DNA of 64,000 nucleotides, taken from Setoptus koraiensis (taxonomy: Eukaryota; Animalia; Arthropoda). Each line of letters starts with the position of its first letter. The first letter of the stretch is position 1. The stretch spans positions 6,262,001 to 6,326,000 of the forward strand of contig CM106586.1 of NCBI GenBank assembly GCA_048013815.1, read 5' to 3'. Of this stretch, positions 2,823 to 55,000 are shown piece by piece. A model generated the notes under the pieces. It was not told the origin of the DNA. It saw only the letters and a list, made by a program, of their open reading frames with translations, and did not search any database. A program made the position numbers and the translations under genes.

Positions 2823-4205
2823 ATGACCTCACAGCCGTTCAGTTCGCTTGAGGATCGTGTCAGCGCTAAAACGCTGAAAGCAATCTATGATCTAGGTTTC
2901 GATCAAATGACTGACATCCAAGCTAGGACTATACCAACATTACTAGAGGGCAAAGACTTGGTTGGTGCAGCAAAAACAGGATCAGGAAAAACACTTGCCT
3001 TTTTAGTTCCAGCAATTGAATTAATGTACAAACTGAAATTTATGCCTCGTAATGGTACAGGTGTAATAGTAATATCACCCACTAGAGAACTAGCCATGCA
3101 AATTTATGGAGTTCTCAAGTCTGTAATTAAAAATCATCATCATACGCATGGATTGTTGATGGGTGGAGTAGAAAGAAAGGTAGAATCAGAAAAATTATCT
3201 AAAGGTGTTAATATTATTGTTGCTACTCCCGGCCGCCTGTTAGATCATCTTCAATCGACAAAAGAGTTCATATACAAAAATCTACAATGCTTGATCATTG
3301 ATGAAGCTGATAAAATACTTGACATCGGTTTTGAGGAAGAGATAAAGAAAATCTTAAGGATATTACCACCTAAGAGGCAGACAATGCTTTTCAGCGCTAC
3401 TTTAACAGAGAAAACGACCGATCTAATTAAACTGGCAATGAAAAAAGAGGCAATCTATGTTGGAATAGAGGAGGAAAAATCTACTGTGGAAGGCTTGGAG
3501 CAAGGCTATGTTGTAGTTAAAAGTGAGAACAGATTTTTACTCTTATACACCTTCCTAAAAAAGAATAAGAAAAAGAAGATCATGGTCTTCTTATCATCAT
3601 GCGACTCAGTTAGATACCATTATGAACTCTTGAATTATATCGACTTACCAGTACTTGCGTTGCATGGTAAACAAAAACAAACAAAACGTTCCCAGATGTT
3701 CTCGCAGTTTTGCAAAGCACAATCTGGAACTATGCTCTGTACAGATGTGGCCGCTAGAGGCTTGGATATACCAAAAGTAGATTGGATTGTTCAATATGAT
3801 CCCCCTGATGACCCCAAAGAGTATATTCATCGTGTCGGTAGAACCGCTCGCGGCGTTGATGGACATGGAAACGCGTTGTTGATTTTAAGACCAGAGGAGC
3901 TAGATTTTCTAAAATATTTGAAGAAAGCTCGTGTCCCCCTGCAGGAATTCGAACTTTCATGGAGCAAAGTTGCCGATATACAGCCACAGCTAGAGAAGTT
4001 GGTAGGAAAAAATTATTTCCTCAATCTATCAGCTAAAAGCGCCTTCAGATCTTACATTAGATCATATGCGTCGCACAGCCTCAAGGAGATATTTGACACT
4101 AAAACCTTGGACTTGGTTTCGGTAGCCAAATCTTTCGGTTTCACGGTGCCGCCACCAGTTGATCTACCTGAACAGGGAGTCAAGAGAAAGAAACGATTCC
4201 ACTAG
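2823..4205 (+). CDS. DDX18: DEAD-box RNA helicase DDX18/HAS1/pitchoune, single exon, 460 aa
   Basis: Q motif, [36 protein letters not shown] and HRVGRTARG motifs, plus the DDX18-specific [14 protein letters not shown] and C-terminal [10 protein letters not shown]. There is an in-frame stop upstream of ATG 2823. Confidence 0.96.
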
Positions 4206-4399
4206 TTTATGAATGTTAAATCTAAGAATATAAAGCGAAAGTTTAAATAACTTTTACAATAATGATTAATTTTATTCGATTAGACTTCATTTATAAATAC
4301 AGGAGACAAGTGTATGATCAAAAAGATACTAAATTGGTTTAGTCTATGGAAGAAAGAGATAGTGAGAGGAGAGGGGGGCGGGTGGTTAGCCGAAGAGTA

Positions 4400-6446
4400 T
4401 CATATAGCAGGGGCGTTCTTGTGTGATCTATTAGCTTGTTGTTGGTGTGGTTGATGATGCTGGTGCCTATGTTGATTCTGTTGCTGGTGTTGTGGCAGTT
4501 GATCTTGCATATGTAGTTGTGGCTGATGTGATTGCTGAGGCTGGTTTAATTGTTGCTGTGCAGAAGGGGCGGGAAGCGGAGGTTGCTGCTGATGATTGGA
4601 CGTTTTATGCTCTCGCGATCCTCTAGAGGCATAAGAGTTAGGTCTTGATCCTCTTCCAAAGTTATTATAATTAGATTTGGCTATACTTCTTTTGGGTTCA
4701 ATGTTTAATCTTTGATTCTTCAGAGTCATGAACTAAGAAAGTGAAACAGAGAATGAACAAAAAATGAAAGAATGGGTTAGTTGAGTGTCGATTAAGAACC
4801 ACTTATGAAAACTGTAAGTATTTAAAACAACTTACCTTTTTCTGAAGGATATTCTGAACTATGGCTGGATTATCGAAAACGATGAAACCAAAATCTGGAG
4901 TTGGTTTTCCAGATTTTGAAAAGTTTCCTTTAGATAGGCGGACGGCTTGAATGGTTCCAAAAACTTTGAAACTTTCTCTCAAATCATCTTCACTAATTTC
5001 GGGTGTAAGATTTCCAACGAACACTTGGTTCTCATCGGGGTATTTCTCTTTCATTCTGAAATCCCCACCATCTGAATTGAGCGCTGGAGTAGTTGGACCA
5101 CCATCTCGATTTTGACGGTTCTGGCCTCGAGGTGTCTGCTTACTAACCATATTAGCCCATGTTTTAGGTTCACTTGAGGAATTAGTGTTGTTATGAACAT
5201 CTTTCTTCAAGGTTGAAGCTTGAAGATCGCTCAAGGCATACGAAGTAGTTGTAGTTGCTGATGAAATAGAAGTCGTAGTTGCTGTTGATGCAGTAGTTGG
5301 TGTGCTTGTAGTTGTTGTTGAAGTTGGTGTATTTGAAGTAGTTGTAGTTGTCGATGCGAAGGAGTTTGCATTAGTTGTTGGCGCATTGGGGGTTGTTGAA
5401 GCCGTTAGTGAATTTGAAGTAGTTGTATTTGTTGTTGTTGCCGGTGCTGGTGCCGGCGCTGATGTAGGTGCTGGTGCTGTTGTTGTTGTAGGTGTTGTTG
5501 TAGTTGTTGCTGGTGCTGGTACTGGTGCTGCCACTGTTGACGGTGTAGATATTGGTGCAGTTGCTGATGTATTTGAAGTTGGTGTTATTGTTGCGGTTGT
5601 TGAAGTTGGTACACTTGGTGGTGCGCTAGAAATTGGTGCATTTGTTGATGCATTCGAGTTGGATATAGCGGCGGCGGCTGGTACAGATGATGATGAAGAT
5701 GATGATATGTGATTAGGATTATCTAAAGAAGTGTTTATGTTTGAGCTACTAATCTCATCTTCATCGATGCCGTCATCTTGGTAACGAAATATATTATTGA
5801 GTACATAGTACTTCTCATTAGAATGATCACTTGTTGTTAATGAGCCAGTTGTTGCTGTGGGAGCAGAGGAGGCATTAGTATTAGTTTGATATGAATGGTT
5901 ATGTTGATTCTGTTGCGGGTTCTGCTGCTGGTGATGATGGTGGTGGTGATGTGTTTGTTGTTGTTGTTGGTGGTGGTGTTCATTCTTGACATTAGTAGTA
6001 GATGTGTGGCTTACTGATGCTGCAGCGGTATTATTATTTTGTTGTCTGGATGTCTCATCCGGACCGGGGGCAAGTACAAATGTTTGTAAGAAGCGTCGCA
6101 TGGGCGCTCCATTGTTAGATAATTCTCCAATAACTTGAATGACTAAACCTCTTCCTAAGGTCTCAAGACTATCAATTTGCTTTATCTTGACTCTGCAATC
6201 ATTTAGCTCTAAATCATCGATTTTCTCTTTGATCTTATCCAAGCCAACGCAGGGGTCTGTTTTTTTCTCTCCCGGTTTCTCTAGTGTTCCGTGGATCAAT
6301 GTTGAATCGTGAGAATAGAACCTATGAGCCAAATGGGGCGCTTTGTTAAGAAACGTGTAATATTGTAGAACGAAATTTCTGGCAATGCTCAATTGACGGC
6401 TATTGTCTATTGAGTTAGGTCTATCAATGCTAGTAGTAGTGACCAT
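4400..6446 (-). CDS. G3BP: Ras-GAP SH3-binding protein G3BP/rasputin; exons 6446-4836 and 4732-4400, ~647 aa
   Basis: N-terminal NTF2-like domain (FVLQYYTFLNKAPHLAHRFY..., QTFVLAP, YYVLNNIFRYQD), PxxP/T-rich linker, PKTWA motif, RRM (QVFVGNL..., DFGFIVFD) and RG-rich tail. A 103-bp phase-0 intron (AAG|gtaagt..ttag|TTC) completes the RRM as ILQKK/FMTLKNQRLNIEPKR. Confidence 0.94.
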
Positions 6447-6593
6447 GGTAAAGGGTAATGGTTGTTGTGGTAGTAATAATTAATAGTAATAATCAATAAT
6501 AATAATTAATAATAGTGATATCTATATATATGCTTATATATACAAATATATATAGACAGTTGTGGTTGTGGTACAAATGTGTGTAAGGAGTGC

Positions 6594-6650
6594 GTTATAC
6601 GCGTATTGTATTGTATTTATAGAATCTGAATATAATGGTAATAGAAATAC

Positions 6651-6682
<32 letters not shown>

Positions 6683-6963
6683 CTACTAGTATCAATATAT
6701 CAGTAGGGTATCAGTGTGATAGCCGACGGTGATATAATTGAGCTCACAATACAATATAATAGTAATAATAATAATGATGGGTGATTTAATAAATACGGTG
6801 ATAATAGCAGCAGTGGGGCTGATAGTTATATTGATAATAATATTCAATGGATAAGTAAGCTGGTCGATGTATTACTCAGACGTACAGTGATACTCTCTTC
6901 TTTTAAAGATGGTCTCCGGTGAGTTCGATATCTCCTCTGTTATTCCATCTATACGCCGTATAG
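6594..6963 (-). repeat. Dispersed repeat copy A: G3BP upstream/5'-leader element homologous to 9715-10093
   Basis: Collinear alignment by eye. Identical blocks include gttatacgcgtattgtattgtatt (24 nt) and tttaaagatggtctccggtgagttcgatat (30 nt, 6902-6931). Confidence 0.95.
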
Positions 6964-7044
6964 TGCATAAGGCAGCAGCAACAGCACAGCAGCGGCATCA
7001 CACACTGCTACTACTAATAGCACTACAGTGCAGCAGAATATCGA

Positions 7045-7045
<1 letters not shown>

Positions 7046-7079
<34 letters not shown>

Positions 7080-7087
7080 TGTGTGTG
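7046..7087. repeat. (GT)n microsatellite upstream of G3BP
   Basis: About 15 perfect GT units, then interrupted units. Confidence 0.9.
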
Positions 7088-7409
7088 CGTGAGCGAGTGA
7101 GTCAGTGTGAGCGTGAGCCCAAACGGGCACGCTGCTTGCGACCAGCATGCTCTCTCGCTCGCTCTCTCTCTCTCTCCTCTGTATACGGCCCCCGCTTCTT
7201 CTACATGAAGATCTAACTAATGCTATCTACACACAACAACAGTAACATACAGCATAAAGTATTCACATAATGAGCAACATTTATTTTCAGTGAATACTTT
7301 ATAAAGCGACTAATAACACCATATTGTAGTGGCGAGCCGAGTCACGTTAACAATATACTCAAATTCTGCATAGAATTAAATTGTTCTATTTGCGAAAGAG
7401 CCGTGTTGA

Positions 7410-7481
7410 GCTCCTATGGCTCAGTGGTAGAGCGTCTGTCTCGTAAACAGAAGGTCGTGAGTTCAAACCTCACTGGGAGCA
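7410..7481 (+). tRNA. tRNA-Thr(CGT)
   Basis: Acceptor stem GCTCCTA/TGGGAGC-A, A box TGGCTCAGTGG, anticodon arm TCTGT-CT-CGT-AA-ACAGA (CGT at 7442-7444), B box GTTCAAACC. 72 nt, no intron. Confidence 0.96.
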
Positions 7482-7485
7482 ATGC

Positions 7486-7490
7486 TTTTT
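7486..7490 (+). terminator. RNA polymerase III T-run terminator of tRNA-Thr
   Basis: TTTTT begins 5 nt after the discriminator base. Confidence 0.75.
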
Positions 7491-7856
7491 GCTACCGGCG
7501 GGCGCGCCCACACCATTCCGAAACGTTTTTCCGATTCGACAGTTGAAGGCATCTCTACAAGACACATCTCCACTATATTCATTCATTTGAATAGAATATT
7601 TTCTTTGAACTCGCCACTCAATCCTTTAAACTTTAATTGTTTCCGAATGCCTCCCCCGTTAAGAATGTCACCTCCACGAGTCTTAGAACTGGTCAAATGG
7701 ACTTCAACAAGACAAAGAAATCAAACCAGAATCTCCACGAGACGCAAAAAGTTCTGCCATAAGAAGTTGATCAGTTTTTTACTTGCTATAGTTCTCTTAT
7801 TGACAGATATTTGTACCTTGAAATTATTATCGATCATTATTGTTGGTAGTTCCGCT

Positions 7857-9699
7857 TTACACTTTTGCATCAGGCTTTTCATTACTTGTATAGTTGCTCT
7901 TGGGGTTGCTGTTGCTTACCTCAGCGCTTTCAGTGTCGTCTTCTTCGTCACTAGTGAATGCATTGTTCGGAACATCGTATAAAACTAACAAAGGCTTATT
8001 TGGATCTTTCAAGAGCAAGTATCTACCTTCGGGCAACTTCATACAGGTATCTATAATACAACGAAGTATTCCCCAAGCATTATCCATATTGAGATTGATC
8101 TGATCAGCGAATTCTTTCGGCCTAAATGATTGCGTGCCTAGTATTATATGCTTGCTTGAGTCCTTGGCATGCACACGAGATACATATCCAAATTTCAATA
8201 CATCCGAGCCGCTGAGAAGGGCCTGTATAGTCCATTTGCCAAGTTTATTGGAGTTATTCTTGAGCTCGCTAGCTAGAACAGCACCACGCTGAACGTCAAG
8301 CTTTTGACGCCAGTCTATGTTACTAGTTGTCTTGGAGTCCCATTCGTTGAAAGCCTTTATATTCATGAATTGTTTTTTGTCATTAGGACCAATTGTAGCT
8401 GCGTCATGCTCACATCTAACTACTAATGTAACATCATCACCTAATTTCCATTTTCTATATCGATAAGCGACTGAACTGACTTCATTTGTATCATCGTTCT
8501 CTACAAATGGATTGGGATTTTCAAATTCTAATTTCTCCTCTCCCATTTTGAGGACTTGCTGAGAAAAGTTGTGATTGATATAAGTTGCTTCCAACGCTAG
8601 ATGACGGGGTGAATTAACGTTATTGTTGGGATCATCTGAGAAGGGCATCTCTATAGCGGTTTCATGGACAGTCAATAGGTCAAAGTCAGATTCATCGCGC
8701 TTGTCAAAGAATAGCTTGTCTCCAACACGTTGAACAATAATGTCCCAAGAGAAGACGGATCTTGGTGCGCACATGAGTGTAGCTATGATAGAGTCGGTGG
8801 CAAAAACGTTACCCTCGGTTTTTGAGAGTTTTCTGATAATCGGATCATCAGTGGTGGTTACTTTGTGTATTACACGATTAACTCTTTGTAAAATTTTTCC
8901 CTGTTTACAGTTAACTCTATCATAAGTCTTGTCATAATATTCTAAGGCACCGCAAAGGTAAACATCTTGTGCCTCTCCAACGCCTGGAAGATTTAATTTA
9001 GATAGACGAGGGAAATCCATTTCTTCTAATATGTCCCAAGTGGGTTGTACGTAGACACTAGCGTCGCGCTTCTTCATTCCGGCGCCCTTGTTGTCATAAC
9101 GGCGTCGTGTGTCTTGACGTTGGTACTTTGTTCTGGATTGTGTGGCCTGTTGCCTGGTAATATTTTTTCCGCCCTTAGTTAACACCAACTGCTGGTGAGT
9201 TCCATGAGTGGCCCTAGCTCCGCCTCTGCCGCGCCAATTACCCCGTGTACCCATGCGACCTAAACGTGTCTTGTTTTTTACATTTGGCCCTTTTCCGGCA
9301 TCAACTAACTGATAGGAGCCATCATCATCTTCAGCATAATAGGAATACTGTTGGCCACCACCGAAATGTGTGGTATATTTCTTAGCTAAACGAATGTCTG
9401 AGTAAGTCTGTCCAGTCCAATCCGCAATCTGCGCGTATGTAAAATATGAATTAGTTATTTATGAGATAAATGAATAGTATTATTAGTATGTACTGCTAAT
9501 TAAGCATGCAGGCACAAGTGGAATTGTCAGCTGTGCAAATATGGCTATTACTTACACGACCAACTCTGTCATTTTTGGAGAATGGCTGATAAGGCATATC
9601 CTTAAATTTATCTGGCACTGTTGTTGGGCCCCAAGTCATGGGATCCGTGTTGTTGAGGTTCTCCATGAGGGAGGCGGCCATATCCGAAAACGAAGCCAT
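7857..9699 (-). CDS. eIF3d: Eukaryotic translation initiation factor 3 subunit D; exons 9699-9556 and 9428-7857, ~571 aa
   Basis: [74 protein letters not shown]. One 127-bp phase-0 intron (CGT|gtaagt..cgcag|ATT); the frame is continuous into ORF 7857..9254. Confidence 0.97.
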
Positions 9700-9714
9700 G
9701 ATTCTTTTCTTCTA

Positions 9715-10093
9715 GTTATACGCGTATTGTATTGTATTATTAATAGAATCTGAATATATAATCGTAATAGAAATAGTAATAATAATAATGATGAGGATGA
9801 TGATAATATTATCAATAAATCAGTAAATCAGTATGATAGTCGATGGTGATATAATTGAAATAATAATTACAATACAATAATGGTGATATCAATAGGTGAT
9901 GTAATAAATACGGTGACAACAGCAGCTGTTTGGCTAATAGTTATATTAATAATAATATTTAATAGACTGTGATGGTGGATAAGTATGATAGCCGATGTAT
10001 CACTCAGACGGTACAGCAATACTATTTATTTAAAGATGGTCTCCGGTGAGTTCGATATTATCTCCTCTAATGTTCCATCTACACGCCGTGTAG
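9715..10093 (-). repeat. Dispersed repeat copy B: eIF3d upstream/5'-leader element homologous to 6594-6963
   Basis: Same collinear blocks as copy A (30-nt core at 10029-10058). Ends 15 nt from the eIF3d ATG. Confidence 0.95.
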
Positions 10094-10177
10094 CATGATT
10101 GAGTGCCGCAGGATGTATATAGGAGGGTCGAATTGATGCTTTCCCCCACATGTCTGCACTAGTACTATTTTCATCTG

Positions 10178-10262
10178 TAAAGGGAGCGTGTCGTGCGGAA
10201 AAGGGAGCGTGCCCGCGCGGAAAAAGGGGCGCGGCAAAAAATTGTCGCGGCGCGAAAAAGAC
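10178..10262 (-). promoter_or_regulatory. GC-rich degenerate ~21-22 bp repeat containing oligopyrimidine tracts (CTCCCTTTTCC on the eIF3d sense strand); candidate TCT/5'TOP-type start region
   Basis: + strand aaagggagcgtgtcgtgcgga / aaagggagcgtgcccgcgcgga / aaaaggggcgcggc. TCT/TOP starts are typical of translation-machinery genes. The TSS itself is not observed. Confidence 0.4.
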
Positions 10263-10729
10263 CTCTTCCATATGATGAGTCGATAATCAAACTCGTTTTA
10301 GATCGTATTCTTTGTTTGGGGCGTGTCAGACACCGCTTCCGGTAAACCTTGGCGCAGTCTCCACCGGTTCAAGTTCTGTCATTTTACCGCTAGATGGTGC
10401 TTTTCCGGGGACTTTCGAATGGGTCCCCGCTGGCCTCCTTACGTCATACCTACTCGAAAATGGTGTCATTCGATGCGGTTTGACCAGTACTAAGCAATCG
10501 TAAAAAAATTCAGCGAAAAAATGTGGTGCCGACAGGATCGAAAGTGAGAAAAACAACTTTTCCCTCCATTCGGCCCCAATTTCGTACATCTGAAACAATG
10601 AAATTATCTGGGCTCAAAGCTTGTCGAATGCGAAACGTGAAAAAAAAGAAGAGCAGTTTTTTTATAGAAAAAAAGGTGTAATCACTGAATCATGTGTAGT
10701 TGTTAGAATTAGTACAAGTTCGAGTTTAT

Positions 10730-23764: not shown

Positions 23765-26700
23765 ACCTGTGTGTGCTCTATCGTGGACGGTACATGTATG
23801 TATTCTTTGTATACACACACACACCTTGTGAGATAAACCTTTGAGAACACACTTGTAGAAGGAAACGGCACGCTGTTGGGCATGCAATAAGTGTATCTGT
23901 CGGCCAGTTTTAAATGATCATGGCAACACAAAAGCAGAGATATAAAGCGAAAATATAAAGCAGCTCAAGCATGCTAATTGAAGACACACTCACTGACGCC
24001 TCCTAGCGGGTCCACCTAGCCAGCGAATTAATCCCGCCCCCCCGACGGCACACACACACACACTCAAGTTGGGCACAGGTGAGCACAGGTGAGTAACGGT
24101 ACTCATAGCATCACAGGCGATATGGCAAGACCGTTTTCGGTCGAACCCAAGTGCCACCAGATGCAAAATGCGCCCGATTTGGCGCATGTTAACATGTTAA
24201 CATGCAGTGTAAGTGCGCACAAAATTCATATCAATTTTGTGATGTAATGCCGCCGATTACATCATAACATAATCAAGTCAACATACATATTACATTATAG
24301 CTCATATTGTGGCCTTACATTTATTATACGGCCAAGTAAGATATACGGCACATATAATATACGACTTGAGCGCATCATGGCAAGAATAAATAAAGTTATT
24401 TTGTCTAGCTGCTGATGCCGTTATGTGGCTGCTGATGCCGTTATGTGGCATGCAACGCATTATCCGGCAAACGGTGTTTGTGTTGCGCAACAATGCAACG
24501 GCCAATATTGTTTGTAGCGGGTTGTTTGTGTTTGCTCAAACTCACTCTCGTTTCTTGTTGCGGCATCATCATGTCATATGTTATTATTCTTTGTGAATGA
24601 TTCTTTATGTATTCTTTATGCATTCTTTATGAGTGTGTGTAACGATGTGGCACCAGTCACGACTGGCCGGCCGAATTTAGTAAGGCACGATCACCGGGAT
24701 TCAAATCGAGATTTAGTTTGCAATTAGAGCGATTGAGCGAGATTCAACGCAGTTTCAACATCGTCAAACAGATGACGACCAAGACGACGAGATGAGATCA
24801 TGCAGCAACGAAGAAGGAGAAAAGAATAATCAAACAAGATTAATAGATTTGCTGCTTGTATCCCCTGTCTGGCCATTACTGCTGCCTATTGCTTGCCAGT
24901 GAGACCCAATATTGCCAATTAAATCATCGAGCGCTGATTGTGAGCACCAGCACACAATCAGCGCTGCATTGTATTGTATTTTGGGAAAGTTTATGTGTGC
25001 TTCAAATGCTCAACTCGTTGGGCAAGACAAACAACATTAACGGTTGTATCACCTTGACAACTGTTGCTGGTTGTTATTGTGTATTATGATATAAAGCGTT
25101 CTTTTCTTTCAAATGTTTGTAAATTTCTTGAATGGCCAATTTGGCTGCTCGACGACGCCAAAACGACGGCAGTCAACAGCAGCGACCAGCAGCCACTATC
25201 GGCCACTAGCGACAGCACGACAACAATAACGGCAACAGTAATGATAATCACGTATCAGATTCAATTGAGTCGCTCGTTGTCTGTGCGGCATCATCCCGAT
25301 CGAGAGCAGCTTGTTCAATGTTCAATTATAACGGACGGACGGACGGATAGACAAAATGCACAAAAACAACACTGCATAAACACAACAAGTGGTCAGTTGT
25401 CTTGTCAATTGATTAGCGAGCCAACTGGCCAGCATTGGATCAGGAAATGCTCAAAAGCCGCACAGACAACACAAAAGAACGTCCAGCAAGACCGATCCGT
25501 CCGGATAATACATGTATCGGGATACATGTCAGCGTGTATTGGGCGCCCATTCGCCTATTGCACTGTTGCACTCCGTGCCAACGGTACGCCGATGACCGTT
25601 GTCTTATGTAACGTTACGTTACGTTACGTTACGTTGAGTTACGTAAGACACTTATGGTAAGTGGTGGAGTTATCGTTGTTGTTGCTGCCGCTGTTGTTGT
25701 TGTGCCAACCGCTTGCATTGTCCGTGGGCATGGGATGGTCAGCGAGCATGTTTATTAGATGATGCATGAATAGTTTTTTTCTCAATGAATAAATCAGAGA
25801 AAGTTGTTGCCGTGTCTCTAGTTCCATAGCACAGTAGTTTACACTATACTGTTACCCATATACCTTGTACATAGTCTATAGAATGTGAGCAGTAAACAAC
25901 ACGGCAGAGTAGTGTCATGGCGGTTGTTGTTGTTGTTGTTGTTGTGGTAATAACCAATAAGCACAATTGATAATTAATCATTAATATTCGTTTGGGATCA
26001 AAGGTTTTCTCGCACATCGCACATCGTTCGAGCTAGTCTTGTATTGATGTCGCTGTCGTTGTCGTGAAGCGAACAGGGCAAGTTAGTTAGCGGAGTACAA
26101 AAAGTTGTAAATATGTAACGGGCCAATTGAACAATGGGGACACTATAGACTCTTTAGCATGGACTCTTTAGCATGGACTCTCTATCAGAGACTCTCTGTT
26201 ATAGACTCTTTATTATGGACTCTATGCCGTGCACTCTATCACAAAGACCGGCTGTCTTCTTTTTGTGCCATTCTCCCAGATTATTCTGCCATCTTGGCCT
26301 TTGACTGGACTGTTTTTGTTTTTATTAGTGGTCACTGGTGGCGTTGCAGTGGCAGTTGTTGTTGCAAACGGGCATAAGTTGTCGGTTAAGTTGGCGTAAG
26401 AGTGAACATGAGCTGTCGTTGTTGTTGTTGTTGTTCACATTTAAATCCCTGCAAACAGAGAAAGAGAGACACTCCAACTGAACCGAACTGAACCAAACTG
26501 AACTGAAATCACGTGATTGCATTACTGAACAAAATAAAATGAAACGAATTGAATTGAAATAAAATAAAATAAAACGAAACGAAATGGACTGAGATGTAAA
26601 ATATCCAATGTAATAAATGAAGGAGGTCGGCCTAGACTCATTAGCATCACAATGGGCATCGCACTGCGGTTGACTTTCCTGTGACAGCTCTCTGCGGCCA

Positions 26701-44623: not shown

Positions 44624-47544
44624 TGTCCGTGCTGCCACATGTGAAACGCAGCAGTCGCAACAGGTAAACTGACTGGACAACCTGAGACGAGATAGCGCAG
44701 CAAATGCTAATGGCAAAAATGGCAAAGCTAACGAAATAATTTGCTTTGGTGCTATTTATGAATAGTGATGCGTGCCAGCTCACAATCAGTCGGTTGCTTG
44801 TCAGTGTCAGCTGTTGAGTCAGTGGACGAAATGGTGCAAATGGCAAACGGTGCTTGTCTGTCACAATGGCAACAAGATTATAGCAACTATGTCAACATTG
44901 CAATTGCATTGTTGCTAAATTAATATTAAAATGCGATTGGCGCTTGCAATTGGGCGCAAAATAAATACAAATTGAAAGCATTTTGGAACAAAACAATGCA
45001 CACATTAATCATATCATGACACACACATGAAAGTGACTCCACACGAAATGTTGTTGTCGCTCGGCGTGCCCGTTAAACAAGTTGTATGATGCAACAAGCA
45101 ATGACATTGTCGCGCATCGCCTTATGTTGACTGGTATGATAAGTATGTTAATTATGATGCAACTACGCAACAGGTAGCTGACTAACTGGCTAACAGGTGC
45201 AGCGAGGAACATCTGTAAAGGTCATCTGTAAATGTGTGCGTTGTAACTTATGCCAAGCAGACTGCATCGTGCGCTTATGTGGTGCGTGTATCAATGGCAT
45301 TAATGGCTGCACCATCGATCGATAGAATGCACCAATGAGGTTACATTTGAAGTTACATTGTTCACGACAACGACAACGACAACAACAGCAGCAACAGCAA
45401 CAACAGCAACAACTGCACCGCCAACGACAGACCGGCAACAAGTGTTGTGCGACAAACAACAACCAGTGGATATAACTGACGTGCATCGACACACACGCAA
45501 GCCGCTCGTTACCTGTGGCATCGAGGTGTGAGCTGTGCTCAACAGCTAGCGGCAACACTCACCTGTCAGTTGTGTGCCTATCGATTGGCTATCGGTTGTT
45601 GCGAATAGCAACTTGTGAATCGCAAGTGAGCGAACAATCTTCACAAGTTGTTTGTTGTTATCAACTGTGCCAGTTAGATATTATTGCAACAGCCATCATT
45701 GATGATTGCTACGCAAAGCCAAATGGCATAACATATAAGTGATATAAATATAAGTGCATTGCGTGCTAATTCGATAGCTGTCCGCATCAGTTGGTCATCT
45801 AATTGTCACGCTGGTCACCTGCAATCACAGCTGACACACCCGGCAGCGCTGACAACGCTGACATCGCTGACACTGCTGACACTGTTGAATGAGTCAGCCG
45901 TGAGCAACAGTCAAACGTAACAATGACAGTTGTCAACAGTTGTCAAATGCAACAAGCAAACACACACACAATTATTAATAAAACATGCATTACATAATAC
46001 ACAATGATCAATGAGTAATGAGCAGTGTGGCCTCATGCGCACCTGCCAAGCACAACAAGCACAACAAGCACAACAAGCACAACAAGCTAGGCGCGTTGAT
46101 ATCGTGTGTAGTCATCGTATATCACATGCGCTATAGTGCATATAATACATATTACATAATACACTGTATGGTATGATGATGGTATGGTAGTACGACGATA
46201 TCAAGTAGCCAGTGAAACTGTGCCGATTGGAGTCTGTTCAGTGGCTCGTGCGATATCGCACACTGGTGAATACGAGCAGCACATATTTGCATTTGTTATA
46301 CATACTCGACATATAACTTATATGATATAAGTGATAGTGGGTAGTACATGTGTTGACCGTATGCCGGCGACAATTTCCATCAATTAGTTTGTCGGTGCGC
46401 ACATAGTGGCGTGGTTGTTGTCGTTGCGTCGGGCACATAGAGCACAATTGAGCGCAAACGAGCACTATAGCGCCCTTGTTGTTGTTGTTGTTGTTGTTGT
46501 TGTTGGTTGGTGCGCGAGCTTTAGTTTGTTATGCTTGCATAATAACAAACTAAACTAGTAGCATAGTCGCAGATTGTCTATGAGAGATAGATGGCGCACA
46601 AGGCGACAAATGCAGTTGTGTGTGCCAACTAAACTTGTAAACTGTCTGGCCTAGCGCAGTTTGGCTGTTAGCTGGCAACTGGCAGCAACTCACAACAAGC
46701 ACACACACATCACTTACATTTGCAAGTTAGTTATGTAATAATAGTAATGATGATGAGCCCACGCATTAAGCTGGCTAGATTAGCTGCCAGACGCAACACG
46801 GCTTGTTGTTGGTGTGTCGGTGGTTGGCATGCCAACGGCGAGCCAGCCATGAATAAGAGTGCACTACATACGCCGCTGCTGCTGCCGTTGCTGTTGCTGC
46901 GTAGTGTTTGTATGCGCCATAGTAATGGATATACCGGTGCTGTGATCATATGTTGCCGACTTGCGATATTCTCTCCACATTTCGCCCTTCTTTTCGCCCT
47001 CTCATCAGCGCTCTTCTGCGCCAAGAGGCTTCTTTCGCTTCTCTCGCTTCTCTCGCTTCTCTGGCTTCGCTGGCTTCTCTGGCTTCGCTCGCCCCGTTCG
47101 CTTGTTGGCTCGCCGTTCGCTGGCTCGCCGTCGAATGGTCGGCTCGCTTGTGGTTTGCGCATCTGGCTTGCGAGCAGCCGAGACAGGAACAGCCAAGAGC
47201 AGCCAAAGGCAGACAGAAGAAGCCAAGCCAGCGCCGACGAGAGTTGATTAGCGCACCACAAGTGCGCAAGTTGCTCGCTCGCTCTCTAACGTAACTGGCA
47301 ACTTTGCCATTATGTAACTCACATATGGCTGCCAGCGAGTGTGGGGGCGAGCACGGGGCCACAAAGTGCGCAGCACAGCAAACCAGCCATTAGCTTGTTG
47401 CGCATAGCTAGAGGGGACACTAGATCAACTGTTAGCTGCACTGTGGGCAGACAGTAATGGATAGACGGCAACGGCAACGGCAACAGTGAGAGCTGGCTTG
47501 CATTAGCAAAAGTTTATCTTGTCCTAATGCCGCTGTTATTACAT

Positions 47545-47742
47545 AATATTCACATAATATTCACGCAATATTCACGCAATATTCACCTAATATTCACTCG
47601 ATATCCACATAGTGTTCAATTGATGTTCGCATAATATTTGCACAACATTCGCACAATATTCGCACAATATCCACACAATATTCACGCAATATCCACACAA
47701 TATTCACGCAATATCCACACAGTATTCACATTATATTCACAT
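47545..47742. repeat. Degenerate 11-bp minisatellite (aatattcacgc consensus) x18
   Basis: Strict 11-bp register over 198 bp despite many substitutions. Confidence 0.88.
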
Positions 47743-49000
47743 GAAATTCGCTGCTCGTCTAGCTTGGGTCTGCTGCTGAGACTCAATGTCTCAATGTGTG
47801 CCAATGTGTGCAAATGTCTGACAATTTGCGCTCGCTGTTAGTGCCACTCGTATATCCAGATATAAACATTGCAGCCTCCAGATAATATCGCTACTCGCAT
47901 GGCCTCATTGCAAGCCAATACGAGCCATTGCGTGGTAACACAAACAACACAACGACACACAGCAAAACAACAGCAACAGCAACAGCAACAACAACAACAA
48001 CAACAAAGACGAATTATTATTACACAACAGCACACATTATAATATCTCAGAGTAATAATAATTGGCATTGGATCTCCGATAATTTGCATTATTATTAGAT
48101 TATTTGCACACATTCACTATACTGGAAACACACGAATTACGCGTGAGAGAGGAGAGATTTTCGAGATTTCAGAGACGCGATTTGCAGCAAATGATTGAAA
48201 CTTGTCGGCACTTGCAGCAATTGAAGCCAAGCAACACGCGTCGTGGTCATTGCGTCGTGTTCAGCATCTAGTTTTAGTCAGTATTTAGTTCAACTCAATT
48301 AGCATCAGTATCAATTAATACGCAACAGTGTTAGCCAGTGTCTAGTCAGCAAGCACGCGCCACAAATCAATTCAAATATTTCGAATTATTCCATTCGGTT
48401 CGATTGAAATATCTCATTACGCAACAATCGTATTAATCAACAATCAGCAACTAGTTTATTTATTTATCCACAGATATCCGCAGACGGATATACGCAGACA
48501 GATATACGCAGACTGATATCAACAGACGTCCACAGATAGCCGCTAAAGCAGATATCCATAGATTGGTTGGCTGCACCTATCGAGAAGAATCGATTCTACG
48601 AATCATTTGGCATCATTTGAGCATCGCATCGAAAAATATCGCCAATCGCGCCGAATAGCCCAGACAGCAGCGGTCAAGTTGAAAACAACAATCAACAATC
48701 AGCAGCGAGCAACAGATTGTCGAATTCGACACACTGACCAGTTAATCATAAAAATCATTTTGTGTGTCACAAAATCATGCTCACGTTAAGTCATCGCATT
48801 ATTGTTACAAATCATCAATCAATACTAATTAAATGTAGTAATTATCTAATATCGAATTGTAGTGCTAGCTGTAGAAGAACAAAAAGAATTGTCAATGGTT
48901 AATTAACGAACGATACAATTCAAATATTCGCTAGGAAAAAACCACACAAACACACACACACACACACAAAAGAGGCTGCCAGTTGAGTGATTAGTTAAAG

Positions 49001-52000
49001 ATGCATAATAAGGAACTGTCAAGATCGCCGATATTATCTAACAATAACAATCACAACAAAGATGCCACTAAAGTACAGCAACAACAACAGCAGCAGAGCA
49101 ACAATGTCGCCGGTGCACTAGTTTATACACCAGCAACAAACAACAACAACAAACGAATAAACAACACTACCAACAGCAACAGCAACAACAAAACAACGGT
49201 CAATGACAAAGCTAGCATCGACGGTGACAACCAAGATACGTCGTCATCGTCTTGCCAGTCATCTACGTTATCTGCGTTCTCTCATTCAACATCGTCGTCG
49301 TTATCATCAATATCGTCCACTTGTTCGCCGACATTAGCCAATGTTGGCTCTTCCTTATTGCCTGTTGCTGCTTCCACATTATCAAATAATATCACAGCCA
49401 ACACCGACACTAACAAAAGCACCGGCAATCTACATTCAGACGCTATTATCCAGTCATCGCCGGGCTTAACAACAACAGCGACAGCAACAACAACAACAAC
49501 AACAACAACACACAACAAGCCAAAGAATATTATTGAAAATGAAATAAATTATGACCAAAACAACATTCAACTTAATGGCAGCAATAACAATGCTCATGAT
49601 AATGGCGTCAGTGGTTATGATGATAGTGCCGCCGTTGCTATTGATGGCAAAGATAAAATAATATTAACAACTACCACAGGCAACCACACAAATGAACAAG
49701 ACGACAATGAAGACAATAATGATGATCATGATGGCGATCGTTATGTGAATAAAATGACTAAGAATAATGGCGTAAGTGAAACCATCACAGGCACAAATTC
49801 AGCAGCAACGGCAAAGACAACAACAGGTGCCATAACAATGATAAACAATGACATGCCAAATACGGCACAGGTAACAGATAATAAAATAATGATGAGAGAA
49901 AGTTACGGAATTGACATGGAACAACAAGACGATGCAAACAATGCAAACAACAACAACAACAACAACAACAGCGGCACCAATGACACTGTTAAACAACAGC
50001 AAACGGTCAACGATATATCAACACAAATACAGATACAGCAACAGTCAGATATTAATAATGGTCAATCAAACAATCACAATTCGAGTGATGATATGATGCA
50101 AACGTCGGAATCGTCGTACCATCAACTCGATTCCTCCTGTTCGACACAAAAGCTTGACGAAGCCTCGTCGCAGCAGCAGCAACAACAACAACAACAGCGG
50201 CTTTCCGCAACGGAATCAAGTGGCGACTCCGCTCAGCAACTAGAACATTATCACAATCAGGCATTGTTGATTCAACAACAACAACAACAACAACACCAGC
50301 AGCAGCACCATCAGCATCACCACCACCATCAACAACAACATCATCATAATCATCATCAGCATCATCACCAGCAACAACAACACCAGCAGCAGCAACAGTA
50401 TCATCATTATCAGCAACAGCAATACCATCACCAGCAACAAACAAACAACGTACACGCCTCGGCCGATTATCTGTCGCAATTAATTAAGGACAAAAAACAA
50501 TTGGCTGCCTTCCCTGCCGTTTTTCTGCACGTACAACGACTGATAGACGAAGGTGAGTACAACTAGACAATTAAATTTGCAATAATTACCAATTAATTAA
50601 TTACCATAGCTAATACTTAATAAAATTTAATGAAACTAAATTGTATTTTAAATTTAAACTGATCAATCGACTGTTTGTCTGGCATGAAACACGCTTTGTG
50701 AATAGAAATTCACAAAGTCCGACAGACCCTTTTTCAAATAAATGGAGTGGCCAGCTCACGACCGATGGAGTTGCCCGAGGCAGAGGGTCCAGTGATTGCG
50801 TTGCAAGAGAAGGTTTATGTTCCTATTGGAGAGCATCCTGAATATAATTTCGTCGGCCGTCTCCTTGGACCTAGAGGAATGACAGCAAAACAATTAGAAC
50901 AGGAGACAGGTTGTAAAGTGATGATCAGAGGAAGAGGCTCTATGAGAGACAAGAAAAAAGAGGAACAGAATAGAGGAAAGGCCAATTGGGAACATTTAAA
51001 TGATGATCTACATGTGTTGATAACAGTCGAAGATACTCAAAACAGAGCAAACATAAAATTGCAACGCGCCGTTGAAGAAGTCAAACAATTGTTGGTGCCC
51101 ATCGTAAGTAACAGTCGATCTTTTGCATTCTTTTCTTTTTTGCCAGCATATCCACATTGATGGGCGCATAGTTTGTCGAGCTGCAGATAATTGAGCCACA
51201 CACAAAGACAGGGTCGTATGTAGACCGTTGTATGGCGATAATATTGCATTTGTATGTATATAATATTGTTGTTGTGCCGCGGACAAACAGGCAGAGAGTC
51301 ACAAAACACATTGAGACGATTCTTGTAATTAGTTGCAATTAGTTGTTGCTGTTGTTAGCTTGTTTGCTCTGTCAGCATCAACTGTCACAAATATCACGCA
51401 AGTTTGTTTGTTAAACGGTTGTTGTTGCAGCCATTGAGCCTATAAAGAGAAAAAGTCAATCAGCAATTAGCAAGCTGAACAATTAGCAATTTTATTAGAG
51501 GAATTTGACGAACAATCAGATGAGTTAATTAGTTAAGTAGGTCGAAATACCGACTCGGATGCCACCAGAGTCTAGTCACCAGAGTCTAGTCACCAGAGTC
51601 TAGTCACCAGAGTCTAGTCACCAGAGTCTAGTCACCAGAGTCTAGTCACCAGAGTCTAGTGACTAGACTAGAGGAGACTAGTTGCGCCACCTGTGGCCAA
51701 CATATCGCACGCTAAACACAATATCGACTATAGGTGCTAATTTGTGAATTTGTTATGCAAATTAGATAAAAGAATATGAATGTCTGGCCTCAATATTGCA
51801 TGCATGAACAATTGTCAATCATTGACGATCAACAATAGATCAGCTGACAGAATGATGTTGTGCCAACAAGATCGATTATCAGTGATTGTTGTGCAATTAA
51901 TTAGTCTGCGAATGAGAGCCATTGAAGCGAAATAGCGGTAACATCGGATCTGTGGTTGTTGTTGTTGCTTGGTTAGTTCATCTACAAGGCGAGTTATTGG

Positions 52001-55000
52001 CTGTTGGCAGGCGACAGACCGCTAATAAGTGACAGTTAGGTGTTTACAAAGTTGCCAATGTTATCGCCAGAGCCAGCGACAACAACAACACCGATGACTA
52101 GCTGCAACCAACTAACAATTGACACGAAAATTTCGTGACGGCAGACAGTGTTGGTTGGACAAACATAACACAAGTTACAAACAGTTGCGCTCACAAGTTA
52201 TGGTGAAGATAAGTTGCGAGTAACTGTAACTTGTGGCAATGGCGCGTATCTGGCGCGTCGTTTGTTTGTGTCGTTATGTAATTGATGATTAATTTTGAAT
52301 TTGCTTGGCGTGGCAACAGTGCGATGGTTGGTGTTGCTAGTGAGTCACAACAAACAACAAAATTGTATCATATTGAGGACGATAATGATCAAGTTTTCAA
52401 GTAGCAGCGTGGCCAAAAGAAGTGAAAGAAGCGACACGGGGGCGACAAGTGCAACAACGAAAAAGTGTGCGCCACGATAGTATTAAATTTATTTTGTTTG
52501 TCACAGTGTAAATAAACTGACTTGTGAGTGAGCGAGTCAGTTTATCTCAAGTGATAAGGCTCGTCAAATTGCCAATTGTGAGGCACACAAACATTTTGTC
52601 ATTTGTTGTCGCGACTCGCGAGCGTTGCCCGTTGGCCATGTTGTGACACGAGAAAAGATAGGAAGTTGCGACAAGTTTAGCTTGCCAGCAATATGAAGCC
52701 AGCAATAACGACGACGACGACGACGACGACGACAGCACGACGAGAGCGGACGAAACGGAGCGAGCTATTTGCATAGATTTTGCAGCTTGGCGTTGTTGTT
52801 TGCGTTTGTTTGTTTGTTTGTTCGTTTGTTCGTTTGTTCGTTTGTTTGTTTGCTTGCTCGCTTGCTTGCTTGTGAACCAGATCCGGCCCGATGCCAGCGA
52901 CTGTGCCGGCCAACAACTGGAGCAAAATGCGATAAATGATATAAGTTATCCAATGTAATATATTATATAACATATTGCATGCGTTGGGCGCAAAATAAAT
53001 GGAAATGGATTCTCAATTGCTCATAATGATCCAGTGATGGCTGCAAACAAAGTGCACACACTTGATACACGCTGTTGTCGTTGCTGGTGCAAACAAGATA
53101 TCGCTGCCATTATAATTACTTGTCGTTGTTTCTCGGTTAGGGCCCTCGGTTGGCACCGTCAGCATGACAGCCAGTCCGTCAGTCAGCCAGCCAGCCAGTC
53201 AGCCAGCCAGTCAGTCAGCCAGCCAGCCAGCGAGTGTGTTTGTGTGTGAGTAAATTGAGATTATAATTAATTAAAAATATATAATATCTGTGCCACAATT
53301 TGGCTGCTTCGTCGCCCCCATTGATTGTGATGAGCTCTTGTGTGTATGATGGATTACGCTTTGCCAGCTCTGATAAAACTGAGCACACACAACACAAAGT
53401 AATAAAAATGAAATGGAAATTGACGGCCAGCTAATCACTTTGCCCGCTTTTTTATCCCTCGCTATGCGGCTATTCGAGCGTCGTTGTCGGCGTTGTTGTT
53501 GTCGTTGTTGGCGCGTCACATACTCAAATGATATACTCAAAATGACAGCTTGCGACAAACAACATGCAGCTTTGCGCCTTAAAAGTCCATCAGACACCAA
53601 CATGTAGCCACATTATGTCACACTGCGGTCCATTATAGGCCGGCATTGTTTTGCACCGGTGGACCATTGTTTCGCGTTGCTTCATAATTGTGTTTTCATA
53701 ATTATTGTCCCACTAATTGCAATTAGCTGCTGCCGCTTAGCTGCCCGACTGCCGTGAACGCTGCTCCAGCGACAGCGACATCTGACGAAATGATTGCCAA
53801 TCGCAAGCCGAGGTGACACAAATCGCCGCCAGTAAATCACAAACCCATCCAACACACCATTGCGCAACAGCTACAATAACCAATAATGATAATTAATAGC
53901 GATAATCAATAACGATAATTAATAATGATAATAACAACCACACAATCTAACACTGTTCATCTAGGTCGATGGCGAAGACGAACTGAAGAAGCGCCAACTG
54001 ATGGAGTTGGCCATAATCAACGGAACGTATCGCGACGGCAATTGTAAGTGCCAGCAACCTTATGCAACCTAATGCAACCTCATGCATTATTATCATTATC
54101 ATGCATTATGCAACGTTTGTCATTGCTCTCTTGGCTCTTGTCAACTAATCAATTGTCTTTTGTTTGTTGCTGCTCACTCTCGCCGTTACAATTGACTCAC
54201 CGACTGAACTAATTGACTCACTCGAATGGAATAACCGAACCGAACCGAATTGAAATGAATTGAAATGAATTGAATTGAATCAACTAATTAACTCGTTTGG
54301 CCAATTAACTCGACCAGCTAATGAGACCGACATGGCCATGTCCAAGCTGCTTGCCGACGCGGTCGCCGGACAACAGCACGCGCTCGCGCCAAATCCGCTC
54401 ACTTCGCCCCTGGCGGCGGCCGTTGCGGCCTCGTCTAGGTCGCCGCATGCGGGCCAAACTAATTTGGGCGGACCCGCCTTGATATTGTCGCCGCGCCATC
54501 AACAGCATCTGCAGCAACAAAATTCCGCTGCTGCCGCGGCCGCCGCCAGTGCCGCTTATTTGGCCGCGGCGGTGACCAACGGGGCCGGTGCCGGCGGACC
54601 GCATCATCAGGCCGCTGCCTCGCATCACGTCCACGCGCAAGCTTATCATCATCAACAGGCGGCGCAAGCGGTAGCCGCTCAACACGCCCTATCGTTCAAT
54701 GCCGCCGCTTTAAATGCCGCCGTCCATCATCATCATCCGCACTTGCATCCGCACCCGCATCCGCACCCGCATCAGCACCCGCACTCGCATCACCACCATC
54801 AGCAACAATCGCAGCACGCCCAAGTGTCCGGACATCATCACTCGAACGGAGGCGTGCCGGTACCCGGTGCCTCAGGCGGGTCACAATTGATGAATGCTGC
54901 CGAGGCAAGTGCTGCCCTATTGTACACACATCAATATCATGATTTTCATCATTATTACGCAACATTGGCCGCCGCCCAGCAACCGCTCATGACAGCGGCC

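Follow-up and report, generated by a model that had tools for sequence, protein, structure and literature searches.

Two neighbouring genes on the minus strand of the 64-kb window (the whole stretch of DNA that was analysed) are each preceded by a copy of the same non-coding segment. The gene at 4803-6446(-) shows Pfam matches to NTF2 (1.9e-23) and RRM_1 (4.4e-11), and its homologues carry the name G3BP, while the ORFs 9496-9699(-) and 7857-9254(-) both match eIF-3_zeta and belong to eIF3d. G3BP nucleates stress granules and eIF3d is a cap-binding subunit of eIF3. The two copies, referred to here as A and B, bracket the whole eIF3d gene together with a tRNA-Thr(CGT) gene, the latter located between copy A and the eIF3d 3′ end. 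The features of the locus are as follows:

4803..6446, minus strand: main coding ORF of the G3BP-like gene (NTF2 and RRM), start codon at 6446
6594..6963: copy A, 370 nt, in the sense orientation of G3BP (minus strand), delimited by blastn and MAFFT against copy B
6597..6606 (9718-9727 in B): 10-nt perfect palindrome ATACGCGTAT, at the gene-proximal end
6902..6931 (10029-10058 in B): 30-nt block identical in A and B, the best-conserved part, towards the gene-distal end
6949..6963 (10079-10093 in B): 15-nt palindrome at the gene-distal end, read directly
7410..7481, plus strand: tRNA-Thr(CGT) gene (ARAGORN; Rfam tRNA, 73.6 bits)
7857..9428, minus strand: eIF3d coding exon 2 with the stop codon (Pfam eIF-3_zeta, 1.5e-177)
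9429-9555: eIF3d intron, 127 nt, placed by alignment with the closest relative (locus L001) and by the splice sites visible in the sequence
9556..9699, minus strand: eIF3d coding exon 1, 48 codons (Pfam eIF-3_zeta), ATG at 9699
9697..9703: 7-mer CATGATT spanning the eIF3d start codon, repeated at 10094-10100 where it abuts the distal end of copy B
9715..10093: copy B, 379 nt, oriented as copy A, delimited by blastn and MAFFT against copy A

Copy B covers positions -16 to -394 of eIF3d and copy A positions -148 to -517 of G3BP, which places their proximal edges 15 and 147 nt from the respective ATG. Both lie on the same strand, in sense orientation, upstream of minus-strand genes. The first-pass annotation had named the two genes and put these distances at 15 and about 150 nt, and the domain matches and measurements agree with it on both points. 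Its position alone dictates that copy B overlaps the core promoter of eIF3d, the 5′ leader or a 5′UTR intron, and a TAG at which such an intron could end lies 12 nt ahead of the ATG.

The repeat pair

Copies A and B are collinear direct repeats situated 3.1 kb apart. They share 77.5% identity over 391 columns in blastn (E=1e-78), and their MAFFT alignment of 390 columns comprises 299 identical positions, 60 mismatches (35 transitions and 25 transversions) and 31 gap columns, for an ungapped identity of 83.3% and a K2P distance of 0.19. The likeness stops sharply at either end, the flanks of A showing no alignment above chance with those of B, and neither flank having extra homology above chance with the L001 locus of the closest relative. 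No third copy was found in the 64-kb window by blastn or with an nhmmer profile, which returned microsatellite matches only, and no other dispersed repeat family was seen there. These results uphold what had been proposed at the outset, namely an alignment of 6594-6963 with 9715-10093 at about three-quarters identity, dissimilar flanks and the absence of a further copy in the window; the exact blocks then given as 24, 15, 14, 15 and 30 nt were essentially right, the maximal exact matches along the diagonal being 24, 16, 14, 15 and 30 nt.

Both copies are AT-rich, with a GC content of 0.22-0.42 in 200-nt windows, and their sense strand is poor in G. An 18-mer taken from the 30-nt identical block matches only copies A and B in the window, with up to three mismatches allowed, and the two window matches of the 10-nt palindrome ATACGCGTAT are likewise those in A and B. 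At the distal 15-nt palindrome, which has no other close match in the 64-kb window, the two copies differ at one pair of mirrored positions, changed in such a way that the symmetry is retained. The conserved motifs of the pair do not recur at other genes in the window.

Conservation along the pair is uneven, being higher in the 110 nt at the gene-distal end and the 45 nt at the proximal end than in between. Permutation tests on run lengths gave P values of 0.05 (longest run), 0.025 (number of runs of at least 14 nt) and 0.011 (top five runs summed). Unstable microsatellite segments correspond to the weakly conserved parts and largely account for this marginal unevenness, although its mild level (P 0.01-0.05) leaves room for some constraint.

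Each copy holds a single ATG on the sense strand against 7-13 on the antisense strand, and the ATG-free leaders extend over 500 nt for G3BP and 378 nt for eIF3d. The depletion has a P of about 0.03 per copy, the two copies not being independent, and it largely follows from the G-poor composition; the native G3BP leader and the eIF3d leader of the closest relative are also G-poor. A protein-coding exon or conserved upstream ORF was ruled out, as stops break all six frames and no open frame is common to A and B. One frame has no stop within the conserved block of either copy, and there all A-B differences are non-synonymous. A known RNA gene or structured RNA was also discarded: both copies are free of Rfam matches (E of 1 or lower) and of ARAGORN predictions, and the DNA fold z-scores of -0.16 and +0.25 are no better than those of shuffled sequences and indicate no foldback.

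Comparison with other eriophyoid mites

Protein comparison identifies the source lineage as an eriophyoid mite, the eIF3d protein being 95% identical to its best match (P0001) and 89% identical to eIF3d of Fragariocoptes setiger. The closest relative compared, represented by locus L001, has 95% amino acid identity in eIF3d with a dS of 0.43, a distance of 0.30 at 4-fold sites and an orthologous intron that is only 52% identical. The loci compared were those of eIF3d in L001, L002 (F. setiger) and L003, and those of G3BP in the eriophyoids L005-L007. The short Logan eIF3d contigs of the relatives are genomic and not transcripts.

Presence at orthologous positions in related mites had been named in the first-pass annotation as a check on its reading, and the outcome went against it. 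Upstream of eIF3d in L001, no copy was detectable, the Smith-Waterman score being no better than that of shuffled sequences. The eIF3d upstream regions of the more distant eriophyoids L002 and L003 had no detectable copy, and none could be detected upstream of G3BP in L005-L007 either. A search of other eriophyoid loci totalling about 69 kb gave no further copy. In the closest relative, the locus of G3BP was not found with a full-length or an NTF2-only query. Homology with L001 ends at window position 9713, which is 2 nt from the edge of copy B and about 14 nt short of the eIF3d ATG.

Remote homology of copy B to the L001 eIF3d leader was considered and rejected, since neither a 61% blastn match nor a likeness seen by eye (TACAATA..CG..ATA) stood out from shuffled sequences (z=1.7 and P=0.47); both are like the matches obtained with unrelated AT-rich stretches of the window.

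The upstream neighbour of eIF3d is kept between this genome and L001, and eIF3d and G3BP are not adjacent in four other eriophyoid species. Outside the mites, a 21-mer scan of metagenomes for the element gave one GC-rich bacterial contig only, a 19-mer scan of prokaryote genomes gave two bacterial MAGs without further similarity, both taken as chance matches, and the viral collection gave no match.

This genome is among the most streamlined in animals. The comparison documents a near-complete turnover of intergenic DNA between closely related eriophyoid mites, a background against which a young 375-bp duplicate is conspicuous. Transposable elements make up 1.54% of the Aculops lycopersici genome (PMC7738191), and their counts are reduced in three eriophyoids (PMC11879100).

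Origin of the repeat pair

We tentatively favour a local duplication of non-coding 5′-flanking DNA that is young and specific to this lineage. A stretch of about 375 bp, rich in AT and containing microsatellites, would have been copied to a site 3.1 kb away in the same orientation, with either A or B as the donor. The source segment could have been native to the region upstream of G3BP or of eIF3d, or could itself have been a recent arrival. The likely mechanism is an insertion templated by repair or replication from a nearby donor, although neither junction microhomology nor the filler pattern of templated repair was found. The copies would afterwards have accumulated about 0.19 substitutions per site, along with indels mainly in the microsatellite parts, as under unconstrained decay. 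Judged from the alignment, their divergence is about what neutral change would produce in a young duplicate; as a K2P of 0.19 is below the neutral divergence between the species, the duplication is probably younger than the split from L001, if it has evolved neutrally. An insertion between promoter and start codon would be tolerated when its sense strand is G-poor and nearly free of ATG, and this tolerance alone could explain the common orientation of A and B. We estimate that two random placements in 64 kb would fall within 3.1 kb of each other with a probability of about 0.1, which favours a local event over random dispersal. With two copies in the window at this spacing, in a lineage poor in transposable elements, and with no canonical transposon ends, an origin by duplication is plausible. 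The copies may also share some transcription-factor sites.

The main rival to a local duplication is a low-copy non-autonomous mobile element, MITE-like or unclassified, that prefers gene 5′ regions or is only tolerated there, which we consider possible but rather unlikely. Local hopping would account for the nearness of A and B, and DNA transposons, including Helitrons, do occur in eriophyoids (PMC7738191). The element is small (370 and 379 nt), AT-rich and without coding capacity, as a MITE should be; it has sharp ends with short palindromes, and it is missing at the eIF3d site of the closest relative, where the break in homology falls at most 2 nt from the edge of B. The shared ends of A and B are each self-palindromic but not complementary to one another, and the best pair of terminal inverted repeats in A (9/11) needs three flank bases from outside the shared region, the same positions in B giving about 7/11 by eye. 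The inverted repeats are thus weak and unlike between copies, and shared ones of about 10 nt or more, as in MITEs, were not found.

Copy A is surrounded by the 5-mers AGTGC and TAAGG in nested order (P=0.38 for a 5-mer match), and copy B by the 7-mer CATGATT, which has a P of about 0.012, uncorrected, in an unbiased scan of the flanks; its left occurrence lies 11 nt from the edge of B and is therefore not part of a canonical target-site duplication. These direct repeats around both copies would suit a mobile element, but they differ in length and register, and no target-site duplication of constant length abuts both ends of both copies. The first-pass annotation was right that the termini show weak symmetry and that AGTGC flanks copy A, but neither feature is statistically significant. 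Two observations run counter to a duplication: the end palindromes, with their one symmetry-preserving paired change, hint at a recognised site, and the 7-nt repeat around B could, together with the 11 extra bases, be the target-site duplication of a mobile insertion. Further copies, even many, may also be present in the genome beyond the 64-kb window.

Particular classes of element were considered individually. A Helitron was rejected, since the termini, read directly, lack TC...CTRR ends on either strand; moreover, the palindrome lies at the very terminus of the element and not 10-12 nt inside as in a Helitron hairpin, and the bases flanking B do not fit an A|T insertion. The TG...CA ends of a solo LTR can be read in A only, after an extension of 3-4 nt on each side, with TAAGG near both ends of the extended copy but out of register, and copy B has neither a TG start nor matching flanks. 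A tRNA-derived SINE was rejected in the absence of a tRNA-like head, of an Rfam or ARAGORN match and of a special fold. No transposase, RT or LTR-retrotransposon domain was present in the large ORFs of the window. The lack of a foldback, and of more copies in the window or in the other eriophyoid loci of this TE-poor lineage, also weighs against a mobile element.

A working promoter or leader module, whose similarity would be kept by selection for joint expression of G3BP and eIF3d, appears improbable. It would draw on the sense orientation of both copies directly 5′ of start codons, the overlap of B with the eIF3d promoter or leader, the depletion in sense-strand ATGs, the better-conserved distal 110 nt and proximal 45 nt with the 30-nt identical block, and the one compensatory change that preserves the distal palindrome. 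However, neither the closest relative nor two other eriophyoids show any conservation upstream of eIF3d, the adjacency of the two genes is not conserved either, and the overall divergence is what neutral decay would give in a young duplicate. The marginal unevenness of conservation matches the positions of unstable microsatellites, the ATG depletion largely follows the G-poor composition, and no other place in the window has the motifs. Of the initial inference that one gene captured a duplicate of the other's 5′ flank, the duplication is thus plausible, but the selected coupling of G3BP and eIF3d is without support, given the lack of a detectable copy in the relatives and a decay at about the neutral pace.

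Least probable is that the repeats are remnants of a larger rearrangement by which eIF3d and tRNA-Thr came to lie next to G3BP, through a tandem duplication followed by a deletion or through a circular intermediate integrating by recombination within the repeat: the direct repeats bracket exactly these two genes and the eIF3d-G3BP adjacency is unseen in four other eriophyoid species, but eIF3d has the same upstream neighbour as in L001 and so has not moved on that side, the segments following each copy have no other similarity, and more steps are required than for a plain 375-bp duplication.

Significance and known systems

If the segment carries the eIF3d promoter or leader, the locus would be a clean natural case of regulatory DNA copied between unrelated neighbours. 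That a portable promoter or leader cassette was copied to the neighbour and now co-regulates G3BP and eIF3d in this lineage is in our view quite doubtful, as is the accompanying idea that it drives both genes or tunes them through the ATG-free leader, small upstream ORFs and the terminal palindromes; if true, a G3BP-eIF3d co-regulation would have newly evolved in this mite lineage. Selection for such co-regulation is not supported, and the locus has no bearing yet on how stress granules are coordinated with translation initiation.

Among known systems, shared 5′UTR regulons of translation-related mRNAs, such as those of TOP/TCT type, have in common with this locus the involvement of an initiation factor subunit and a segment located where the leader would be. 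In those regulons, however, the shared signal is a short cross-species motif located at the transcription start, whereas the 375-bp block here is confined to one lineage and to a pair of genes, and the conserved block matches a TCT-like initiator only in part. When MITEs and other non-autonomous DNA transposons insert 5′ of genes, they sometimes donate cis-regulatory sites, and the element resembles them in its length of about 375 bp, its AT-rich and non-coding sequence, its sharp ends with palindromic motifs and its promoter-proximal location. It differs from them in having no convincing terminal inverted repeats, constant target-site duplication or foldback, and in being known from two copies in the 64-kb window of a lineage with very few transposons. 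A further comparison is with lineage-specific small segmental or templated-insertion duplicates of promoters or 5′ flanks between neighbouring genes. As in these, there are two co-oriented, non-coding copies a few kb apart, each upstream of a gene, missing in relatives and with a divergence consistent with neutral decay, even though donor and recipient are indistinguishable here and the junctions have no diagnostic microhomology.

The repeat pair and its two genes

Copies A and B, which lie upstream of G3BP and eIF3d respectively, are 77.5% identical over 391 columns (blastn, E=1e-78), and their MAFFT alignment of 390 columns contains 299 identities, 60 mismatches (35 transitions and 25 transversions) and 31 gap columns, giving an ungapped identity of 83.3% and a K2P distance of 0.19. 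The similarity stops sharply at either end and the flanks of A and B resemble each other no more than by chance. In the 64-kb window, a permissive blastn search and an nhmmer A+B profile found no third copy, only microsatellite matches, and a repeat finder found no other dispersed repeat family. The first-pass annotation, made from the sequence alone, had thus described a real collinear pair at the correct coordinates (blastn, MAFFT); its exact blocks are essentially matched by the maximal exact matches along the A/B diagonal (24, 16, 14, 15 and 30 nt), and the same searches bear out its dissimilar flanks and its statement that the window holds no other copy.

Features of the G3BP-eIF3d interval (window coordinates)
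4803-6446, minus strand: ORF of the G3BP-like gene, with an NTF2 domain and an RRM
6594-6963: copy A, 370 nt, collinear direct repeat of B
7410-7481, plus strand: tRNA-Thr(CGT) gene, antisense, between the eIF3d 3′ end and copy A
7857-9254 and 9496-9699, minus strand: eIF3d ORFs (Pfam eIF-3_zeta)
7857-9428, minus strand: eIF3d exon 2 (sequence and alignment to a relative)
between exons 1 and 2, minus strand: eIF3d intron, 127 nt (same basis)
9556-9699, minus strand: eIF3d exon 1 (same basis)
9715-10093: copy B, 379 nt, collinear direct repeat of A

The two domains of the ORF at 4803-6446 identify it as G3BP-like. Copy A stops 147 nt short of the G3BP ATG and copy B 15 nt short of that of eIF3d, each in the same orientation relative to its own gene, and since they are direct repeats they bracket the whole eIF3d gene together with tRNA-Thr, the only tRNA gene of the 64 kb and the only match there to reach the Rfam gathering score. 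The spacing of 3.1 kb has a chance of about 0.1 for two copies placed randomly in the window. The most likely reading, which we hold tentatively, is that roughly 375 bp of 5′-flanking DNA were recently duplicated locally, between these neighbouring genes; it is favoured because the copies are close and in the same orientation, in a TE-poor background and without transposon hallmarks. The segment would probably have been copied by templated repair or replication that used a donor close by, and both copies would then have decayed in a roughly neutral manner.

Ends, flanks and element classes

The main rival, a low-copy non-autonomous transposon, is possible but rather less likely. Terminal inverted repeats are weak, A pairing at 9/11 positions only when three flank bases are counted and B more poorly. 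Each end is self-palindromic: the proximal palindrome, ATACGCGTAT, is identical in A and B, and in the distal 15-nt palindrome the copies differ by a single pair of mirrored changes, which keeps the symmetry and for which we estimate a chance of a few per cent, a hint rather than proof of a recognised site. The flanks of A carry two different 5-mers in nested order, in flanks where a 5-mer match is expected 38% of the time. CATGATT occurs both at the eIF3d start codon (9697-9703) and abutting the distal end of B (10094-10100; P about 0.012 before correction), the former separated from the edge of B by an 11-nt stretch that can be aligned with L001, the eIF3d locus of the closest relative. No transposon domains were found in the large ORFs of the window, and the eriophyoid genomes that have been published contain very few TEs (PMC7738191, PMC11879100).

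Most other classes were rejected. A and B have no detectable coding capacity, contain no RNA families or tRNA-like structure, and fall outside the definitions of Helitron and SINE; their secondary structure is no better than that of shuffles, which rejects a foldback element. The TG...CA termini of a solo LTR can be read in A when it is lengthened by 3-4 nt on either side, while B lacks the TG start and has no matching flanks.

Composition and start codons

Both copies are AT-rich (GC 0.22-0.42 in overlying 200-nt windows), carry (AAT)n and other short tandem repeats related to it, and have a strong excess of G over C on the plus strand, which makes G scarce on the gene-sense strand. G is equally scarce in the native 147-nt leader of G3BP and in the 208-nt eIF3d leader of L001, the latter without an ATG. 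On the sense strand A and B contain one ATG apiece, which lies at position 16 counted from the distal end and starts an ORF of 2-3 codons, against 7-13 on the antisense strand; between this lone sense ATG and the real start codon no other occurs, over 500 nt for G3BP and 378 nt for eIF3d. Given the base composition, this is a modest depletion (P about 0.03 for each copy, the copies being non-independent). We read it as a tolerance filter, whereby an insert that separates a promoter from its start codon persists only when oriented so as to be ATG-free, which would also account for the common orientation of A and B. The eIF3d start context AATCATG recurs just distal to B (10094-10111, minus-strand sense), so that an upstream ATG with this very context opens an ORF of 5 codons (MLHGV, stop).

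Conservation along the alignment is marginally uneven, with match/mismatch permutation giving P=0.05 for the longest run, P=0.025 for the count of runs of at least 14 and P=0.011 for the five longest summed. The least conserved stretches are microsatellite-like, and such sequences mutate fast via slippage. Even searches that tolerated mismatches placed the best-conserved motifs nowhere else in the window; they are therefore not general promoter words there.

Several other repeats were observed. A GC-rich 22-nt unit (consensus AAAGGGAGCGTGCCCGCGCGGA, 2.5 copies at 10179-10231) lies about 90-140 nt distal to B, and a GTGAGC hexamer array, also with GAGCGTG, in the distal flank of A (7083-7118); both could be parts of native promoters. 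A (TG)23 microsatellite lies next to A (7046-7091). Within the native leader of G3BP there is a 13-nt tandem repeat, TAATAATTAATAA (6474-6514), to which 53884-53933, 47 kb away, is 82% identical over 50 nt, in what looks like low-complexity similarity and not a dispersed element. Minisatellite arrays lie at 47509-47784, 51549-51681 and 26130-26255 (an 11-nt unit in about 25 copies and two different 14-nt units), and CAA/CAG-type coding repeats are very numerous across the window.

The orthologous eIF3d locus and the age of the pair

The eIF3d protein is closest to those of eriophyoid mites (Fragariocoptes setiger, 89% identical; Logan contig L001, 95%), and we compared the window with the loci L001 (3.8 kb, SRR33593474), L002 (F. 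setiger) and L003 (another eriophyoid), and with the G3BP loci L005/L006 and L007, which come from two additional species. The gene upstream of eIF3d is kept in L001, and the loci are therefore orthologous. Across eIF3d the DNA is 88% identical (dS 0.43, JC distance 0.30 at 4-fold sites), the 3′UTR 79% and the intron just 52%. Upstream, homology extends from the ATG to 9713, two bases short of the proximal edge of B, and resumes only at 10688, right behind the upstream gene's stop codon. The 1.1-kb intergenic region of L001 contains no A/B-like sequence above shuffled controls and does not resemble the rest of the window; no copy was found in L002, L003 or L005-L007. Between mites this similar in eIF3d, intergenic DNA has been almost wholly replaced (window 9700-10729 against L001 464-1647, and 7482-7705 against 3621-3807): about 14 nt before the ATG, 40 nt past the upstream gene's stop and 150 nt of 3′UTR are still alignable.

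As neutral DNA (intron and intergenic) is essentially unalignable between the two, the missing copy in L001 fits two scenarios equally well: B may have been inserted after the split from L001, or B may be the native eIF3d leader, with the L001 leader its diverged orthologue and A new. The comparison thus assigns neither donor nor recipient. It does rule out an old module that selection has conserved since before the split, since such a module would be expected in L001. The identity of A and B (83% ungapped) is far above that of the orthologous introns, which places the duplication after the split unless the copies are constrained.

The first-pass annotation had proposed a promoter/leader module, kept by selection, that couples G3BP and eIF3d expression. 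B must by its location overlap the eIF3d promoter, leader or a 5′UTR intron, and could share some sites with the G3BP upstream region; however, none of the measurements requires selection and the comparative data speak against an old conserved element, so the functional claim is unsupported and we consider it improbable.

G3BP and eIF3d are not neighbours in the L002, L003 and L005-L007 species. In the window, an SPB4-like DEAD-box helicase gene (+) has G3BP (-) and then eIF3d (-) beside it (2823-6446 onward); in L003 (7648-11554) G3BP does not intervene, and eIF3d has the helicase gene immediately upstream on its own strand, and in L002, L005 and L007 both genes have other neighbours, eriophyoid gene order being variable. 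That a rearrangement brought eIF3d and the tRNA beside G3BP, leaving the repeats as scars, is conceivable but less economical, and very improbable. Under the local duplication that we favour, A and B are a feature of an ordinary kind, a young duplicated non-coding segment.
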